Below are positions 7,501 to 60,879 of a stretch of DNA of 64,000 nucleotides, piece by piece. The translations under genes and the position numbers were made by a program. How positions within the stretch are numbered: position 1 is the stretch's first letter; the number at the start of each line of letters is the position of its first letter. The DNA is taken from the sequence record PP885688.1; one strand, 5' to 3'. The notes under the pieces were generated by a model. That model was not told where the DNA came from, made no database searches, and worked only from the letters and a program-made list of their open reading frames with translations.

Positions 7501-8322
7501 GACTGGCAGAGCGTAGCTGTAGCCATCCGAGGAGCCAAGTGCGTTCTGAACGTTCCCGTCGCCCGAGCGCCAGAGTCCGCTGTCGCCGGTGATCGGTCCG
7601 AGGTTGGTGAACTGGTAGGGAGCGGCTGGAGTTACGGAGTCCTGATTCGCCTGGCCCCATACGGTCTGCGAGGTAGTAGCGCCGGGATCAAGTCCGAGGT
7701 CAAACTGGGTGAAGTCGTAAGCAAGGTCGATCGACTGAGCGCGGATGGCCCACTGCAGTTGGGTGCGGTCGGTGGTCTTCTTTCCTGCAAAAGGATCGAT
7801 TGTGTCGTTCGGGATCAGGTTTCCCGGTAGCGCGTTGACGCAGCCGTTCGGGTAGTAGAAGAGGTTGCCGGTGGTCGGATCCTTGAAGTAGCCCGTACCG
7901 TCATCGGTGTTGAGACGCTGGTACCAGAACTCCAGGAACACGATGTAGATCGAGGCGGGCGGTGCGGCGGATCCGGGGGACCAGAAGATCGGGGCAGGCA
8001 GCTGCACGATGTTGCTCGTGAGCGACGCGGACTTGTTGCCGCCGATGGTCACGACTTCGCCGTTGACGAGGACGTCGAAGGCGGGGATCGTGAAGGCGCG
8101 AGGCTGTACGTTGCTGCTGTTCGCAGTGAAGGTGAATGGGGAGTACGTCAGAGCGCCGGAGCTGACCTGATTGGCGAGGATGTCGGTGCGCTTCTGATCC
8201 TGAACCGCCTGAAGGAGGTTGAGGTCGGCGTCAGAGAGCTTTTTATCGTGCAGACCAACGACACTCACCAGAGAGCGGTTTGATGGGTCGAGGGTCCGTG
8301 ATGCGCCGGGGTTCGTAATCAT
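4582..8322 (-). CDS. Tail fibre/tailspike-like virion protein with C-terminal right-handed beta-helix
   Basis: 1246 aa; N-terminal LSDADLNLLQ resembles tail-attachment N-termini; C-terminal TLYVDNIHGNDGNDGLT..AYQSIGAAL followed by beta-rich repeats is pectate-lyase-like. Confidence 0.6.
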   Translation of the reverse strand: MITNPGASRTLDPSNRSLVSVVGLHDKKLSDADLNLLQAVQDQKRTDILANQVSSGALTYSPFTFTANSSNVQPRAFTIPAFDVLVNGEVVTIGGNKSASLTSNIVQLPAPIFWSPGSAAPPASIYIVFLEFWYQRLNTDDGTGYFKDPTTGNLFYYPNGCVNALPGNLIPNDTIDPFAGKKTTDRTQLQWAIRAQSIDLAYDFTQFDLGLDPGATTSQTVWGQANQDSVTPAAPYQFTNLGPITGDSGLWRSGDGNVQNALGSSDGYSYALPVAVVFQRNTGAYSVDSNPFGSADPATPNSGLVSSSITGRYDGKYADVIFPADVIDTRSVISLEGWANEELLRTGFVDIISGKTRLNLARGNSPGNLPTAIGSLLDYTITMAQTAGANTDNVGSFDGYRNGFSSADQTFYTSQALTVDQKTAGVAGSRWIEGDSFSVSLPSSSLATIEFAQAQGLVSDQVTQLKTPVLFLSGQVTVTGLGTKTVTITFAKDLTGTTYDPGLNPIYVTIGVEYPANGGVDLVQTPSAVPGGLLTDSASGLTLPVYGVSDYAVQNALPAVNALAAFCYNPSYSNVIFGTRVQTTISGSLGVVTTTQSGSSITTFTMSRLGLNVNLTGLYIVAAADQVTGAAYSIASRIISGTTFILAIQGPVPTTSTVVLTFLAQNTAQVSYNAPVKAITVIEETVLAGSVADPLFRPDPRIQVISVKNFPGDHNTVILATTGGTLTGIAGDDVNKLIWVKDASGNYDAVTVASAVFANSFVTLSVPPTVNLEVQPFFIVGSLCPALPATSQLTLIESYVPYQGEGSVSRDYEIVHTEDFALVTTNGTGTAPVPGLKDIYPYNRELPIATALPSQVTWSDATLLNQPVASFFDSNFEAKSFDNVEHTFEVPAHTNDFIEPINGNKRKTFQLSTISGGRGYAKAIPHMGFAIRPLTPKTVTGKGVISTISSITLYVDNIHGNDGNDGLTVGTAYQSIGAALQSLPSVLQHPCSIQLVPTGTAYDISKLQNSLQVVALGDGVIRSAKYYALGVLCYTIQESGRLVITAQAGTSGRITIDASSFTGFGDGPTAAFYIENSRVIFNQIEFKGFSDPAVKGIDANVEFVDCAFTNNLQAASFEQGSSVILDGGIMTLSTSSTGFVTTQSDLVVSGTTFAVPTGTAPGSFFVAERGSSMTLQTHSPSLETNITAAMVIAQAQLNSSIVVSSDFTSLGAAAISTNSVLSRTVSVTPFSGGITSDASSTVTTDI

Positions 8323-45314: not shown

Positions 45315-45401
45315 GCGGGTGTGACGGAATTGGCAGACGAGACGGCCTCAAAAACCGTTGTCCACATGGGCGTGAGAGTTCGACCCTCTCCACCCGCACC
45401 A
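45315..45401 (+). tRNA. tRNA-Leu(CAA)
   Basis: Cloverleaf, long variable arm, encoded CCA. Confidence 0.9.
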
Positions 45402-45413
45402 CAAGTTTGAGAT

Positions 45414-53475: not shown

Positions 53476-53552
53476 TCCGGAGTAGCTCAGTGGTAGTAGC
53501 GGCTGGGCTGTTAACCAGAAGGTCGGGGGTTCGATCCCCTCCTCCGGAGCCA
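53476..53552 (+). tRNA. tRNA-Asn(GTT), apparent 8-nt anticodon loop
   Basis: Cloverleaf, G73, CCA; CTGG-gctGTTaa-CCAG. Confidence 0.8.
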
Positions 53553-53628: not shown

Positions 53629-53706
53629 TGGGGAGTAGCTCAAGTTGGTAGTAGCGCCTGACTCTGAATCAGGAGGTTAGAGGTTCGAGGCCTCTCTCCC
53701 CAACCA
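53629..53706 (+). tRNA. tRNA-Gln(CTG)
   Basis: CCTGA-ctCTGaa-TCAGG, CCA. Confidence 0.92.
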
Positions 53707-53724
53707 ACAAGTTTAGTTTCACGA

Positions 53725-55547: not shown

Positions 55548-55605
55548 GTCGTTGACAGCGTAAAGTCCGTCAAGTCGAAGACGTAAAAACTTCGGCCAAG
55601 TTTGT

Positions 55606-56293: not shown

Positions 56294-56369
56294 GGGGCTG
56301 TAGCTTAGTTGGGAGAGCGCTTCGTTCGCAACGAAGAGGTCAACGGTTCGATCCCGTTCAGCTCCACCA
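56294..56369 (+). tRNA. tRNA-Ala(CGC)
   Basis: G3:U70, CTTCG-ttCGCaa-CGAAG, CCA. Confidence 0.93.
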
Positions 56370-56494
56370 CAAGTTTGTACAATTCCTGACTTTTGCACAC
56401 ATTAGTACAAGTCAGTGGAGGAAACAATGCGATGCGTAAAGAGACGTGGTGCAAGGGGGCCTATGCGTTAGGTGTCTAAAGGAACACCTACCGT

Positions 56495-57761: not shown

Positions 57762-58943
57762 ATGTCGATGCAGTTAGTTGATGGAATCATCCCAGTGTTC
57801 GGCGAAGCAGACGAGAACACTCTCACCCAGATCCGCACGTGCTTGAAGACCGCCGATAAGGTCGCACTGATGCCGGACAACCACCTTGGCTACGGAGTCC
57901 CAATCGGGGGCGTAGTCGCTTACAAGGACGCCATCAGTCCCACCGGCGTCGGATACGACATCGGCTGCGGCAACAAAGCAGTCCGGCTCGACATCAGCGG
58001 CGAAGAGCTCCGCAAGGGCATCTACCGCACGATGAACGAGGTCTGGTCCAAGGTCAGCTTCGGTGTAGGCCGGAAGAACGGCGAGAAGGTTGACCACGCT
58101 CTGTTCGATGACGACGCCTGGAAGTTGAAGGCGATCAGTGGACTGAAGGATAAGGCACGGGCGCAGCTCGGCACCGTAGGAAGCGGCAACCACTATGTGG
58201 ACCTCTTCATCGACGAGCTCGACCGGGTATGGTGTGGGGTCCACTTCGGATCTCGTGGCTTCGGTCACGGTGCCGCAACGTGGTTCCTCAAGGCAGCGGG
58301 AGCGTCGGACGGCATGATGGTGGAGCCTTGTGTTCTGCCGACGTCAGGCAACCTCGGTGCTGAGTATCTGGAGGCCATGCGTCTCGCCGGTGAGTACGCT
58401 TACGCCGGTCGTGACTGGGTCTGCCAGAAGGTCGCGGACATTCTGCGGGCGAACATTGTGGAGGTCATCCATAACCACCACAACTACGCTTGGAGAGAAA
58501 CCCACGGCGGAGAGGATTTCTGGGTCGTCCGTAAGGGCGCTACTCCAGCTTTCCCGGGACAGAAGGGCTTCGTCGGTGCCACCATGGGCGAGGAGTCAGT
58601 CATCCTCGAAGGGGTCGAGAACGAGAACGCGAAGTACTCTCTCTACTCGACGGTGCATGGTGCTGGTCGTGCAATAGGTCGCATGATGGCGAAGGGTATG
58701 GTCGACAAGAAGACGGGCGCTGTGAAGCGTGCTGGTCTGGTGTCGCCGGACATGATGAAGGGTTGGGTCGACAAGGCAGGCATCGAGTTGCGTGGTGCCG
58801 GTATCGACGAGTCGCCTGACTGCTACAAGCGTTTGGACGTGGTGCTCGATCACGTTGCGGACTCGGTCAAGATCTTGCACCGCCTGACTCCGGTCGGTGT
58901 TGCGATGGCCGGAAGCAACGAGTTCGATCCCTACAAGGACTAG
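57762..58943 (+). CDS. rtcB: RtcB-family RNA ligase
   Basis: MPDNH.GYG.PIG, GYDIGCG, GSGNHY, HFGSRG, HNHHN, VRKGAT, HGAGR, DESPDCYK. Confidence 0.95.
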   Translation: MSMQLVDGIIPVFGEADENTLTQIRTCLKTADKVALMPDNHLGYGVPIGGVVAYKDAISPTGVGYDIGCGNKAVRLDISGEELRKGIYRTMNEVWSKVSFGVGRKNGEKVDHALFDDDAWKLKAISGLKDKARAQLGTVGSGNHYVDLFIDELDRVWCGVHFGSRGFGHGAATWFLKAAGASDGMMVEPCVLPTSGNLGAEYLEAMRLAGEYAYAGRDWVCQKVADILRANIVEVIHNHHNYAWRETHGGEDFWVVRKGATPAFPGQKGFVGATMGEESVILEGVENENAKYSLYSTVHGAGRAIGRMMAKGMVDKKTGAVKRAGLVSPDMMKGWVDKAGIELRGAGIDESPDCYKRLDVVLDHVADSVKILHRLTPVGVAMAGSNEFDPYKD

Positions 58944-58990
58944 TAGTGAAGGCCCCGGGAATGCTAACACATTCCTGGGGCCAGCAAGAT

Positions 58991-59067
58991 CGGAATGTAG
59001 CGCAGCCTGGTAGCGCACTTGTTTCGGGAACAAGGGGTCGAGAGTTCGAATCTCTCCATTCCGACCA
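58991..59067 (+). tRNA. tRNA-Pro(CGG)
   Basis: C1:G72, A73, canonical cloverleaf. Confidence 0.95.
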
Positions 59068-59073
59068 TTCATC

Positions 59074-59155
59074 CCCTATGTAGCGCAGTGGTCAGCGTGC
59101 CAGCCACGGTAGCAGAGGCTGGAGGTCGTTCGTTCGAATCGAACCATTGGGGCCA
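59074..59155 (+). tRNA. tRNA-like RNA with an expanded (11-13 nt) anticodon loop
   Basis: Canonical acceptor, D and T arms and CCA; CCAGC-cacggtagcagag-GCTGG. Confidence 0.7.
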
Positions 59156-59171
59156 AGTTTATGAGGAGAGT

Positions 59172-59951
59172 ATGCACCACGTCATCCAAAACGATCTCTA
59201 CAACGAGCAAGGGTTCAACGCTCTGATGGATACGCTGACTGAGCTCGGCGCTCCGTTCACGGTAGTGAAGGTGATCCCGTTCGTTCATGAGCTGGAGCCG
59301 GACATCAACCTTGAAGGTGAGGTGATGGTTTGGGGCGCGACGACGTTAGGGCACATCTCCCGGCTCAAGGGTTGGACGCCAGGTGTGTTCAAGACCGATG
59401 AGTTCGATATGCGTGTGCTTCACGCACGGTACGGCGAGCACATGTTGAATAGTGACGCCGCCTTCTGCACGTTCTCAGAGCTCTCCTTTGAGGGAGTGAA
59501 GTTCGTTCGCCCAGTACACGACTCGAAGACCTTCACCGGCGCACTGGTCCACTCGGAAGAGATGGCTGCGTGGATTGAGAAGGTGCAGAGAGCGGAGAAC
59601 GATGGGTTCACGTCACTGGATAGTGACACGCCGGTGATGTACGCGGACCCGAAACAGATTCAGCTCGAAGCCCGCTACTTCGTAGTTGGTGGCAGGGTCA
59701 TCTCGGGCAGCACGTATCGGGTTCACGGGCGGTCCCAGAAGCACAATCTGGACAACAACCCAAACCTACGTGACCTGCAAGAGTTCGCCCAGTCAATGGT
59801 GGATCGCTGGAGCCCGGATCGGGCGTTCGTCATTGATGTGGCGATCACCGGCGACGATGAGTACAAGGTCGTTGAGATAAACGCATTGAACAACGCAGGC
59901 TTCTACGCCTGCAACATGGGAGCGGTCGTTCGCGCGATCGAATGTTTATGA
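59172..59951 (+). CDS. ATP-grasp domain protein (R2K/DUF4343-like)
   Basis: FVRP..DSKTFTG, EARYFVVGG..ISGSTY, FVIDVA..KVVEIN..NAGFY; GAGGAG SD before ATG 59172. Confidence 0.8.
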   Translation: MHHVIQNDLYNEQGFNALMDTLTELGAPFTVVKVIPFVHELEPDINLEGEVMVWGATTLGHISRLKGWTPGVFKTDEFDMRVLHARYGEHMLNSDAAFCTFSELSFEGVKFVRPVHDSKTFTGALVHSEEMAAWIEKVQRAENDGFTSLDSDTPVMYADPKQIQLEARYFVVGGRVISGSTYRVHGRSQKHNLDNNPNLRDLQEFAQSMVDRWSPDRAFVIDVAITGDDEYKVVEINALNNAGFYACNMGAVVRAIECL

Positions 59952-60325
59952 TCACAGCAAAGCAAGCACAAGCCGCAGCAGCCAAGAAGAAACGTGACGA
60001 AGCGAAAGCTGAACGCGCGAAGGTGAAGGAACGGGCTGATCGCCGCACCTCCGACCGCAAGTATGCAAAGACTCAGGTCCCTAGCGAGCTGGAGAAGATC
60101 GAGGCTCAGATCAAGGAAGCGATCGCTGCCGACGCGAAGGAGACACTTTACATCACGCGCGACAACTATGTTGGTGAGTGCCTCGTGGGGTGGCTCGTCC
60201 CCGCGCTCGTCAGGCTTGGATTCAAGGCTGAGCCGAAAGAGGTATATGTGCCAGGCGAGCGGGGCAGCTATGACGAACCGAGCTGGGACGCATACACGAG
60301 CCACCGCATCAGGATCGCGTGGTGA
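59948..60325 (+). CDS. Hypothetical protein (125 aa)
   Basis: ATGA-coupled to the ATP-grasp gene. Confidence 0.7.
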   Translation: MITAKQAQAAAAKKKRDEAKAERAKVKERADRRTSDRKYAKTQVPSELEKIEAQIKEAIAADAKETLYITRDNYVGECLVGWLVPALVRLGFKAEPKEVYVPGERGSYDEPSWDAYTSHRIRIAW

Positions 60326-60462
60326 GCAACGAGAAGTATCTGCCAACGGTGTTGATCGTCCTGCAGGTTGCCGCAGCGATCGTATACGCCTTTCACAAAG
60401 ACATGCGCCGCACAGTGTACTGGTTCTGCTGCGCAGCACTCACAGCATCGGTCACGTACTAG
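60322..60462 (+). CDS. Small two-TM membrane protein (46 aa)
   Basis: GTGA overlap; MSNEKYLPTVLIVLQVAAAIVYAFHKDMRRTVYWFCCAALTASVTY; not in ORF track. Confidence 0.65.
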   Translation: MSNEKYLPTVLIVLQVAAAIVYAFHKDMRRTVYWFCCAALTASVTY

Positions 60463-60470
60463 GAAATCGA

Positions 60471-60680
60471 ATGCACGCAGAGAAGAGATCAGGTCAGTTG
60501 AACGACGCCGGTGAGGCCGTCTACTTCGTCACAGCCGACGACGTTGTCCTTCTGGCCGGTAAAGTCGGAGTCGCCATCACAAAGAAGATCGCCGAAGAGT
60601 GGCTGAGAGATCCTAAGTCCCGCATCGAGCTCGAAGCTGCGATCGACGAACACATCAAGCACCGTATGCGGTGGTTGTAG
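60471..60680 (+). CDS. Hypothetical protein (69 aa)
   Basis: AGGA SD; 3' part of the 205-aa track ORF. Confidence 0.6.
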   Translation: MHAEKRSGQLNDAGEAVYFVTADDVVLLAGKVGVAITKKIAEEWLRDPKSRIELEAAIDEHIKHRMRWL

Positions 60681-60686
60681 CAACAT

Positions 60687-60764
60687 CCAAGGGTTTCAGT
60701 GGGAGGGCGGCGTGCATCTCGAGTGCACCGGTGCCGGAGCGTTCGATTCGCTCCCCTTGGGCCA
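60687..60764 (+). tRNA. Divergent tRNA-Arg(TCG)-like RNA
   Basis: Perfect acceptor CCAAGGG/CCCTTGG, T arm, GTGCA-tcTCGag-TGCAC, CCA; C at position 33, weak D arm. Confidence 0.55.
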
Positions 60765-60774
60765 AGTTTAGTTT

Positions 60775-60852
60775 CGGGATGTAGCGGAGCCTGGTTACCG
60801 CGCTAGTCTGGGGGACTAGAGATCGCTGGTTCGAATCCAGCCATCCCGACCA
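60775..60852 (+). tRNA. tRNA-Pro(GGG)
   Basis: C1:G72, A73, CTAGT-ctGGGgg-ACTAG. Confidence 0.93.
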
Positions 60853-60855
60853 CAC

Positions 60856-60879
60856 AAGCCACCTTCGGGTGGCTTTTTC
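60856..60879 (+). terminator. Intrinsic terminator ending tRNA array 2
   Basis: AAGCCACC-TTCG-GGTGGCTT-TTT. Confidence 0.85.

Follow-up and report, generated by a model that had tools for sequence, protein, structure and literature searches.

A tRNA-shaped gene with an oversized anticodon loop in the tRNA array of Tunturiibacter phage Tunturi_5

Introduction

Phage tRNA arrays are now seen as a counter to the bacterial immunity that cuts tRNAs, and the odd genes found in them are usually dismissed, either as 'undetermined' or as pseudogenes. A gene of this odd kind, here called ODD, lies in the tRNA array of Tunturiibacter phage Tunturi_5 (PP885688.1), a jumbo myovirus of 308,711 base pairs (bp) whose isolation host is the acidobacterium Tunturiibacter psychrotolerans (PMC11924767). 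It combines the body of a tRNA with an anticodon loop of 11-13 nucleotides (nt), which raises the question of what such a gene is kept for. The analysis of a stretch of 64,000 nt of this genome (the window, in which a position equals the record position in PP885688.1 minus 186,000) suggests that ODD is a selected gene whose RNA would keep the shape of a tRNA and would not decode.

The authors who described Tunturi_5 counted 43 tRNA genes, three of them as 'unknown', and among the gene products they noted are gp279, a CCA-adding enzyme, and gp296 (RtcB), a 'tRNA splicing ligase' (PMC11924767). No tRNA table was found in the supplements of that paper (PMC11924767), and the GenBank record annotates no tRNA feature in the stretch that holds ODD. 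In a scan of the whole phage all tRNA genes fell within record positions 231,000-256,000, and, according to the annotation and the tRNA scan, ODD is surrounded by rtcB, the gene for the CCA-adding enzyme and a near-complete set of tRNAs. An earlier note on this DNA had described an otherwise canonical tRNA near rtcB, with CCA and an 11-13-nt loop lacking a U33 in register, and the sequence at 59073-59155 agrees with this description; the explanations that it proposed are weighed below. Both the phage and its host have been cultured (PMC11924767), so that the question is open to direct experiment.

A canonical tRNA body with an expanded anticodon loop

ODD (Table 1) has the cloverleaf of canonical tRNAs, with stems of 7, 4, 5 and 5 bp and the conserved tertiary nucleotides (U8, A14, G15-C48, G18G19, G26, T54-Psi55-C56 and A58, as in usual tRNAs). 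Its acceptor stem (59074-59080 with 59145-59151) has a U4·U69 mismatch among its seven pairs, the D arm reads GCGC / AGUGGUCA / GCGU, and the anticodon stem has 5 bp (CCAGC, 59100-59104, with GCUGG, 59118-59122). They are followed by a variable loop of 5 nt (AGGUC), a T arm GUUCG / UUCGAAU / CGAAC, a G as discriminator (G59152) and an encoded CCA (59153-59155). The preceding base, C59073, is able to pair with G59152 and is kept in the orthologue described below (on contig L064), as is the entire 6-nt spacer that separates ODD from the normal tRNA-Pro(CGG) upstream.

The Rfam tRNA model scores ODD at 49.5 bits (E 2e-10, gathering score 29) in a search of 111 bases, and only there, the speed filters of Rfam dropping ODD in 20-kb and whole-genome searches. 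It is also detected by ARAGORN, although the calls disagree between settings: by default it is called Pro(CGG), by means of a weaker alternative stem (formed with the first copy of the repeat described below) and a long variable region, and with introns forced it is called Cys(GCA) with a 4-nt 'intron', a setting that was discarded because normal tRNAs were mis-called. ODD is a genuine tRNA-shaped sequence with an oversized loop, and not a chance match.

Table 1. Features of the ODD locus in window positions, with the changes seen in relatives L064 and L077
Feature	Position	Strand	Description
rtcB (gp296), RNA 3'-phosphate/5'-OH ligase	57762..58943	+	Annotation; Pfam RtcB on homologues
tRNA-Pro(CGG), normal	58991..59067	+	6 nt 5' of ODD; 4 differences from L064, in stems, compensatory, anticodon loop unchanged; only compensatory stem changes relative to L064 and L077
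Block of ODD, gp297, gp298 and gp299	59069..60681	+	Present in Tunturi_5 and L064; 342 nt instead in L077 (blastn, tRNA scans)
ODD, odd tRNA-like gene	59074..59155	+	tRNA-Pro-derived cloverleaf, G73, encoded CCA; ARAGORN, Rfam tRNA, covariance model
Expanded anticodon loop, CACGGUAGCAGAG	59105..59117	+	13 nt, or 11 nt if C59105-G59117 pairs; 59107, 59109 and 59111 differ in the orthologue
Apparent imperfect tandem repeat, GCAGAG then GCUGGAG	59112..59124	+	Read from the sequence; GCUGGAG comprises the 3' strand of the anticodon stem and two more bases
gp297, R2K-clade ATP-grasp protein	59172..59951	+	Starts 17 nt after ODD; Pfam R2K_3, R2K_2
ODD2, second tRNA-like element	60687..60764	+	7-bp acceptor stem, T arm with UUCGAUU loop, G73-CCA, degenerate D arm
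tRNA-Pro(GGG)	60775..60852	+	Followed by a terminator-like hairpin, 60856-60875; 14 differences from L064, mainly in stems, largely compensatory, anticodon loop unchanged
tRNA-Phe			7 differences from L064, in stems, largely compensatory, anticodon loop unchanged

In the anticodon arm RNAfold also pairs C59105 with G59117, which lengthens the stem to 6 bp and leaves a loop of 11 nt; the arm folds predominantly in this way in both orthologues. The sole U of the loop is at 59110, and no 7-nt register anchored on the stem has U33, so that ODD lacks the loop of canonical tRNAs, with its 7 nt, U33 and purine 37. The six extra bases (GCAGAG) probably arose when the 3' strand of the anticodon stem was imperfectly duplicated in tandem, over 6-7 nt; under this view the loop before the duplication would have read CA-CGG-UA. 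An antisense target of the loop was also sought, but matches to its complement, whether in the window or across the entire phage, were not more frequent than in controls.

Proline ancestry

Several features connect ODD with tRNA-Pro. The C1:G72 pair is present, the T loop is of the Pro type, ATGTAGCGCAG is identical in ODD and in the adjoining tRNA-Pro(CGG), and the D arm is that of normal tRNA-Pro(UGG/CGG) genes on unrelated viral contigs. A covariance model built from the two ODD copies gave these copies 113-114 bits, and the best of the others among about 150 tRNAs were tRNA-Pro, with at most 62 bits. By these marks the body of ODD descends from tRNA-Pro, and its ancestor was probably of the Pro(CGG) type. 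The two genes differ in that in ODD the acceptor pairs 2:71 and 3:70 are flipped from G-C to C-G and the discriminator is G instead of A. The identity set of bacterial proline tRNAs is composed of G72, A73, G35 and G36 (PMC10404621); ODD has C1:G72, yet it carries G73, and CGG occupies positions 34-36 only in the weak alternative fold, in which the orthologue has UGA.

A conserved body and a free loop

The sole orthologue of ODD, L064:2481-2562, lies on a JGI metagenome contig that was reached through the gp297 and RtcB proteins, and the same orthologous sequence is also present in a soil metagenome run; the metagenome runs found are of DNA. Tunturi_5 and L064 are 84.8% identical (blastn) over the region 58983-60853, and the two ODD copies show 4 differences in 82 nt. 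Three of them are in the loop (59107 C>T, 59109 G>A and 59111 A>G), and the remaining one, 59148 T>G in the acceptor stem, replaces the U4·U69 mismatch by a U·G pair. Only 1 of the 69 non-loop bases has therefore changed, against a regional divergence of 15.2% (binomial p = 1.5e-4) and against 25 of 210 bases in the bodies of three real tRNAs (p = 0.007; Table 1). The loop behaves in the opposite way, with 3 of 13 bases changed compared with none of 21 in the anticodon loops of the real tRNAs (p = 0.048), and the rates of loop and body differ within ODD itself (p = 0.012). The 16-nt spacer 3' of ODD accumulated 4 differences.

This pattern is the inverse of that of normal tRNAs, since in ODD the body is frozen and the loop is free, and it argues for a non-decoding job. 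It indicates that the body is under purifying selection at least as strong as that on working tRNAs, and that the positions standing for the anticodon, which vary between close relatives, are free of selection, in contrast to the conserved anticodons of canonical tRNAs. A body almost invariant in a region that diverged by about 15%, joined to a free loop, thus means that ODD is selected, but not as a normal decoder. The same near-invariance shows that it is not a decaying pseudogene, in which neutral, uncompensated divergence of the stems would be found; none is seen against the one orthologue compared. As for conservation through protein coding, the only long reading frame over ODD is that of gp297 prolonged in the 5' direction, past its ATG and its Shine-Dalgarno site, and this explanation was rejected.

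No further copy of ODD was found in three pattern scans of IMG/VR (loop plus variable loop; anticodon arm; Pro-type D arm to T loop with any spacing), nor with the oversize-spacing pattern across species genomes or in JGI metagenome contigs, a collection that evidently lacks the samples holding the relatives. The matches from these pattern scans were normal tRNA-Pro and tRNA-Met genes only, and blastn of ODD against 50,697 phage records returned Tunturi_5 itself and a weak match in Vibrio phage nt-1. The relatives were reached through proteins alone: L064, which has the orthologue; L077, which lacks ODD; L078, whose contig ends too early to include ODD; and L079, which has rtcB in another context.

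The locus: rtcB, tRNA-Pro and the R2K block

ODD starts 131 nt after rtcB. No promoter-like site was found between rtcB and tRNA-Pro(GGG), and the first good terminator is the hairpin past the latter gene, for which reason rtcB, tRNA-Pro(CGG), ODD, gp297-299, ODD2 (a second tRNA-like element, described below) and tRNA-Pro(GGG) probably form one transcription unit. In L077, whose RtcB is 92% identical, rtcB, tRNA-Pro(CGG) and tRNA-Pro(GGG) are kept and the 342-nt replacement carries two small reading frames. Because L077 lacks ODD together with gp297, gp298 and gp299, ODD is an accessory element that moves with the R2K gene block. ODD was also absent from the vicinity of rtcB on two IMG/VR contigs whose RtcB is 74% identical.

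The proximity to rtcB, which the earlier note had stressed, is real as a neighbourhood, although it has a simpler explanation, since a normal tRNA-Pro is often found directly after rtcB; the pairing of both genes is common without an odd tRNA and therefore needs none to be explained. A tRNA-Pro follows rtcB in many viral contigs (L012, L015, L018, L020, L021, L031, L036, L040 and L056), at a distance of about 10 nt or less in the first five of them. In L031 and L056 the anticodon loop of this tRNA-Pro(CGG) is CCCGGAC, with C replacing U at position 33. The RtcB of the phage shows 76-78% identity to RtcB of Acidobacteriota (e.g., Terracidiphilus), so that an origin of the gene in the host lineage is probable. 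In L064 a 756-nt insertion (L064:1655-2397 against window 58923-58982), with reading frames of 64 and 172 amino acids, separates rtcB from tRNA-Pro(CGG); the 64-amino-acid frame is also present in L078.

Homologues of gp297 lie inside tRNA arrays in 33 of 80 IMG/VR loci (L080-L159), mostly on contigs of 100-600 kb, and the R2K gene in these arrays often starts right after a tRNA, usually a normal one; another homologue, 61% identical, was found on a 192-kb NCBI contig. This arrangement, which is not described in two R2K papers, suggests that the gene is connected with translation or tRNA biology. The idea that R2K genes are associated specifically with aberrant tRNAs, suggested by the contigs L065 and L066, was rejected, since the 80 further loci usually show normal tRNAs. 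Both of these contigs, which belong to a more distant phage lineage, carry about 100 nt 5' of the R2K gene a tRNA-like gene (L066:5210-5283 and L065 ~7826-7898) with an anticodon loop of 5-6 nt, a G1·G72 mismatch and ACCA; the difference in loop length between them may be a homopolymer sequencing error, the contigs carrying many indels. No functional clue was obtained for gp298 and gp299.

Interpretation and alternatives

The interpretation favoured here, to which a probability of about 0.6 is given, is that ODD is a selected gene for a tRNA-shaped RNA from tRNA-Pro that is non-decoding and would be transcribed and cut out like its tRNA neighbours. It is considered non-decoding because there is no usable register of U33, anticodon and purine 37, and because the former anticodon positions change freely. 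In the proposed course of events, a tRNA-Pro copy would have gained six bases in its anticodon arm by the 6-7-nt tandem duplication and would have lost codon reading, its acceptor, D, anticodon-stem and T parts being held almost invariant. Its RNA would probably be transcribed with rtcB, tRNA-Pro(CGG) and the R2K gene, and then excised like the neighbouring tRNAs, with which it has in common the kind of leader, the encoded CCA and a trailer of the AGUUUA type. Once released, it would act through its tRNA shape. It is tentatively proposed that the body may serve in trans by engaging, as a mimic or decoy, a tRNA-binding factor of the conflict over tRNA damage and repair; candidates for this factor would be a host nuclease directed at tRNAs or some other binder of the tRNA-Pro body. 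A role in trans is preferred over one in cis because the real tRNA located 6 nt upstream offers the same processing sites, and because the whole body is frozen, not the acceptor/T half alone. A decoy had been among the options of the earlier note and looks compatible with the conserved body, the free loop and the tRNA-repair neighbourhood. If ODD indeed soaks up a host tRNA-binding nuclease or factor, it would represent a new kind of phage counter-defence, and there would be reason to re-examine the aberrant tRNA calls in large phages; if it is merely a processing signal or a slowly dying copy, it would be an ordinary case.

Some points speak against this interpretation. All the selection statistics come from a single pairwise comparison with one orthologue, in which a local recombination event could mimic the conservation of the body. 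L077 does without ODD, so that at least one lineage can dispense with it. The decoy view is tied to no particular nuclease, binding partner or target, and, were the role in cis, the tRNA-Pro upstream could supply the same processing sites.

A possible, although doubtful, alternative is that ODD came with the R2K cassette, became a redundant decoder beside tRNA-Pro(CGG), and now acts in cis as punctuation, its fold setting the 5' end or the stability of the gp297-299 mRNA through RNase P and 3' processing. The joint presence or absence of ODD and gp297-299 would be explained in this way, as would the location of ODD and ODD2 at both flanks of the three-gene block, and the R2K genes of other jumbo phages that very often start just past a tRNA; for such a role the loop would not matter. 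On the other hand, the upstream tRNA makes such sites redundant, RNase P needs mainly the acceptor/T half and yet the D arm and the anticodon stem are invariant too, and the association is drawn from three genomes only. More unlikely is that ODD is a tRNA-Pro duplicate, disabled only recently, whose decay has still to set in. The earlier note had proposed to recognize a pseudogene by an unconserved loop together with decaying stems, and only half of this was found: the loop is unconserved (besides being expanded and devoid of U33 and purine 37), but the stems hold. Also in favour of such a duplicate, L077 does without the gene and about 3% of the tRNA-like genes in related arrays have aberrant loops; however, the 13-nt loop is older than the split of two phages that diverged by about 15% here, and the single change in 69 body positions improves a pair (p = 1.5e-4 to 1.6e-3). 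Slow decay keeps some likelihood because everything rests on one comparison.

The remaining alternatives would return ODD to translation. That it is an unconventional decoder, whether one for frameshifting or bypass or one that reads alanine GCY codons with its Pro-type body, is improbable: frameshifting or bypass, which the earlier note had contemplated, found no positive evidence, and the varying loop sequence argues against it. The alanine version draws on the only heptamer in which both orthologues have U33 and A37, (G/A)U-(A/G)GC-AG, whose anticodon would be AGC or GGC (both Ala), with the three loop changes falling at position 32, at the wobble position 34 (AGC to GGC) and outside the heptamer. 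This heptamer is nevertheless flanked by 4 and 2 unpaired bases, so that its anticodon lies within an 11-13-nt loop, and no ribosomal decoding is known to use a loop of this kind; the chance that three changes spare five key positions is also considerable (p ~0.2). Such a decoder would resemble the Streptomyces mistranslators tRNA-ProX, in which odd loops (A33, A34) and shifted anticodons are compatible with the function of a Pro-type tRNA (PMC10404621), but ODD has G73 instead of A73 and there is no ProRS-like gene in the phage, where no match to a class II synthetase core or an HGTP anticodon domain (i.e., a partner synthetase) was found. Still less probable is a mini-intron or repair-activated tRNA, in which part of the loop would be excised and RtcB would reseal the ends into a working anticodon loop. 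The closeness of rtcB and the anticodon-loop insertions of 52-60 nt in tRNA-shaped genes of other jumbo-phage arrays would suit this idea, which also came from the earlier note. When all single excisions leaving seven bases were enumerated, however, none gave U33 and purine 37 in Tunturi_5 and none giving a canonical loop was common to both orthologues; moreover, the varying bases would fall in the would-be exon, rtcB followed by tRNA-Pro is common without an odd tRNA, and no match to a splicing endonuclease (PF01974) was found in the whole phage. The least probable explanation is an anticodon stem extended to eight pairs (C-G, A·A, C-G) that would present a 7-nt loop, GGUAGCA, with the anticodon UAG of a missing tRNA-Leu. 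The remark of the earlier note on UAG and AAG as missing Leu anticodons holds for the tRNA set of the phage (which has CAA, GAG, CAG and UAA only), and RNAfold draws the inner C59107-G59115 pair in Tunturi_5. The orthologue, in contrast, reads UGG at those positions, has A instead of G at position 33 and folds with other inner pairs; in addition, the proposed loop has G33 and C37, ODD has G73, and its variable loop is short, against the Leu tRNAs of this phage, which measure 78-92 nt and none of whose features is seen in its body.

It is conceivable, though again doubtful, that ODD, ODD2 and the loop-disrupted or insertion-bearing tRNA genes of jumbo phages belong to one class of selected non-decoding mimics, serving as decoys or baits for tRNA-attacking immunity alongside RtcB, the CCA-adding enzyme and the replacement tRNAs.

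Comparison with known tRNAs and tRNA-like RNAs

ODD is outside the canonical tRNA-Pro, the frameshift suppressors, the intron-bearing tRNAs, the tRNA-ProX and the Y RNAs, because a defining feature of each of these classes failed when tested. In the full-text literature searched, whose coverage is incomplete, no report was found of selection acting on a phage tRNA gene whose anticodon loop measures 11-13 nt. ODD shares with tRNA-Pro (Rfam RF00005) the cloverleaf, the tertiary nucleotides, C1:G72, the Pro-type D arm and T loop, the encoded CCA and a place in the array beside tRNA-Pro(CGG), and differs from it by a loop of 13 or 11 nt instead of 7, the lack of U33 and purine 37, G73 instead of A73, and unconserved anticodon positions. 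The suppressors sufA6 and sufB2 are +1 frameshift suppressors that derive from tRNA-Pro and have one extra base (an 8-nt loop), U33 and a defined quadruplet. They are similar to ODD in having a tRNA-Pro body and an enlarged anticodon loop, but in ODD the extra bases are six and the loop sequence varies, and it shows neither the 8-9-nt loop, nor U33, nor the defined extended anticodon of this class. An intron-containing tRNA was rejected because there is no workable excision, six bases are too few for a bulge-helix-bulge and the phage has no endonuclease homologue.

The tRNA-ProX of Streptomyces and Kitasatospora are mistranslators with C1:G72, A73, A33/A34 and a 7-nt loop, usually neighbouring ProRSx, and they resemble ODD in their Pro-type body (C1:G72), their shifting non-Pro anticodons and a non-canonical position 33 (PMC10404621). 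Of the features that define them, ODD has C1:G72 only, together with G73 and a 13-nt loop, and is not accompanied by a ProRS-like gene in the phage. Certain phage tRNAs with substitutions in the anticodon loop have been proposed to escape anticodon nucleases (PMC10264068), and they are comparable to ODD in belonging to an array set in a context of tRNA-targeting defence; they keep, however, 7-nt loops and decoding, and ODD cannot decode by standard rules. Unusual loop bases of this sort are also present in the rtcB-adjacent tRNA-Pro genes with C33 (L031, L056).

YrlA is a bacterial Y RNA that mimics tRNA, is encoded in rsr-yrlA-rtcBA operons, has its ends within the Ro-binding stem and needs Ro/Rsr. 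Like ODD, it is a tRNA mimic encoded beside rtcB, although its topology differs from that of ODD. A Y RNA/Ro system was rejected, since the whole phage has no match to TROVE and the Rfam matches are to tRNA only, with no Y RNA family. The context of RNA repair in phages has been treated elsewhere (PMC7824862).

ODD resembles two known kinds of tRNA-like RNAs, namely the small RNAs of phage tRNA clusters and the tRNA-like processing signals. The first kind is represented by RNAC and RNAD, small stable RNAs of unknown role from the tRNA region of phage T4, which are likened to ODD by description, as non-tRNA small RNAs inside a phage tRNA cluster (PMC3014915). Unlike them, ODD has a complete cloverleaf and the size of a tRNA. 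The second kind includes the tRNA punctuation of mitochondria and the mascRNA of MALAT1, eukaryotic or organellar cases in which the tRNA fold is kept for the processing enzymes and the anticodon loop is free. The kept fold and the free loop are as in ODD, which has in turn a real tRNA 6 nt upstream, so that its need for such a signal is less evident.

ODD2, trailers and other unusual tRNA genes

ODD2 is located directly 5' of tRNA-Pro(GGG), about 1.5 kb downstream of ODD, and has, in addition to the elements listed in Table 1, a hairpin with the loop UCUCGAG. Conservation is unusually high in the 94-nt spacer that precedes tRNA-Pro(GGG), where L064 shows 4 differences; ODD2 is present in all three related phages (Tunturi_5, L064 and L077), and a compensatory change converts its acceptor pair C2-G71 into G2-C71 in L077. 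The 3' part of ODD2 and its trailer match ODD in 25 of 31 nt. ODD2 received no ARAGORN call and no Rfam tRNA match (only the tRNA-Sec model matched, with 18.8 bits), and a search with a pattern from its conserved acceptor/T half gave zero matches.

A spacer motif, (C)AAGTTT(A/G), is present just past the CCA of several array tRNAs and of ODD and ODD2 (window 45401-45413, 53706-53724, 55596-55605, 56369-56382, 59155-59161 and 60764-60774), and this trailer, (C)AAGUUU(A/G) in the RNA, is probably a general processing feature and not a link specific to ODD and ODD2. A hairpin ending in GCCA precedes tRNA-Pro(UGG) and tRNA-Pro(CGG), and may be a shared processing signal.

The tRNA-shaped genes of other jumbo phages with anticodon-loop insertions of ~52-60 nt are L086:1902-2030 and L071:422-558, scored by the Rfam tRNA model at 48.7 and 51 bits, respectively; the loop of the L086 gene starts with CUGUGG, and the gene has G73-CCA. 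Their insertions match no ribozyme family and do not fold into a clean bulge-helix-bulge. In Tunturi_5 the sole GUU (Asn-type) tRNA (window 53476-53552) has a non-standard anticodon loop, of 8 nt (GCUGUUAA) or of 6 nt according to ARAGORN, and also G73 and a weak D stem. The tRNA-Lys(UUU), beyond the window (L001:24579-24663), is 85 nt long, and UUCG caps its long variable arm. Related jumbo-phage contigs (L065, L066, L067, L071 and L080) have Lys, Arg, Asn and Gln tRNAs of 86-93 nt, where several of them adjoin a normal-length tRNA for the same amino acid, as in the Lys(CUU) and Asn(GUU) pairs.

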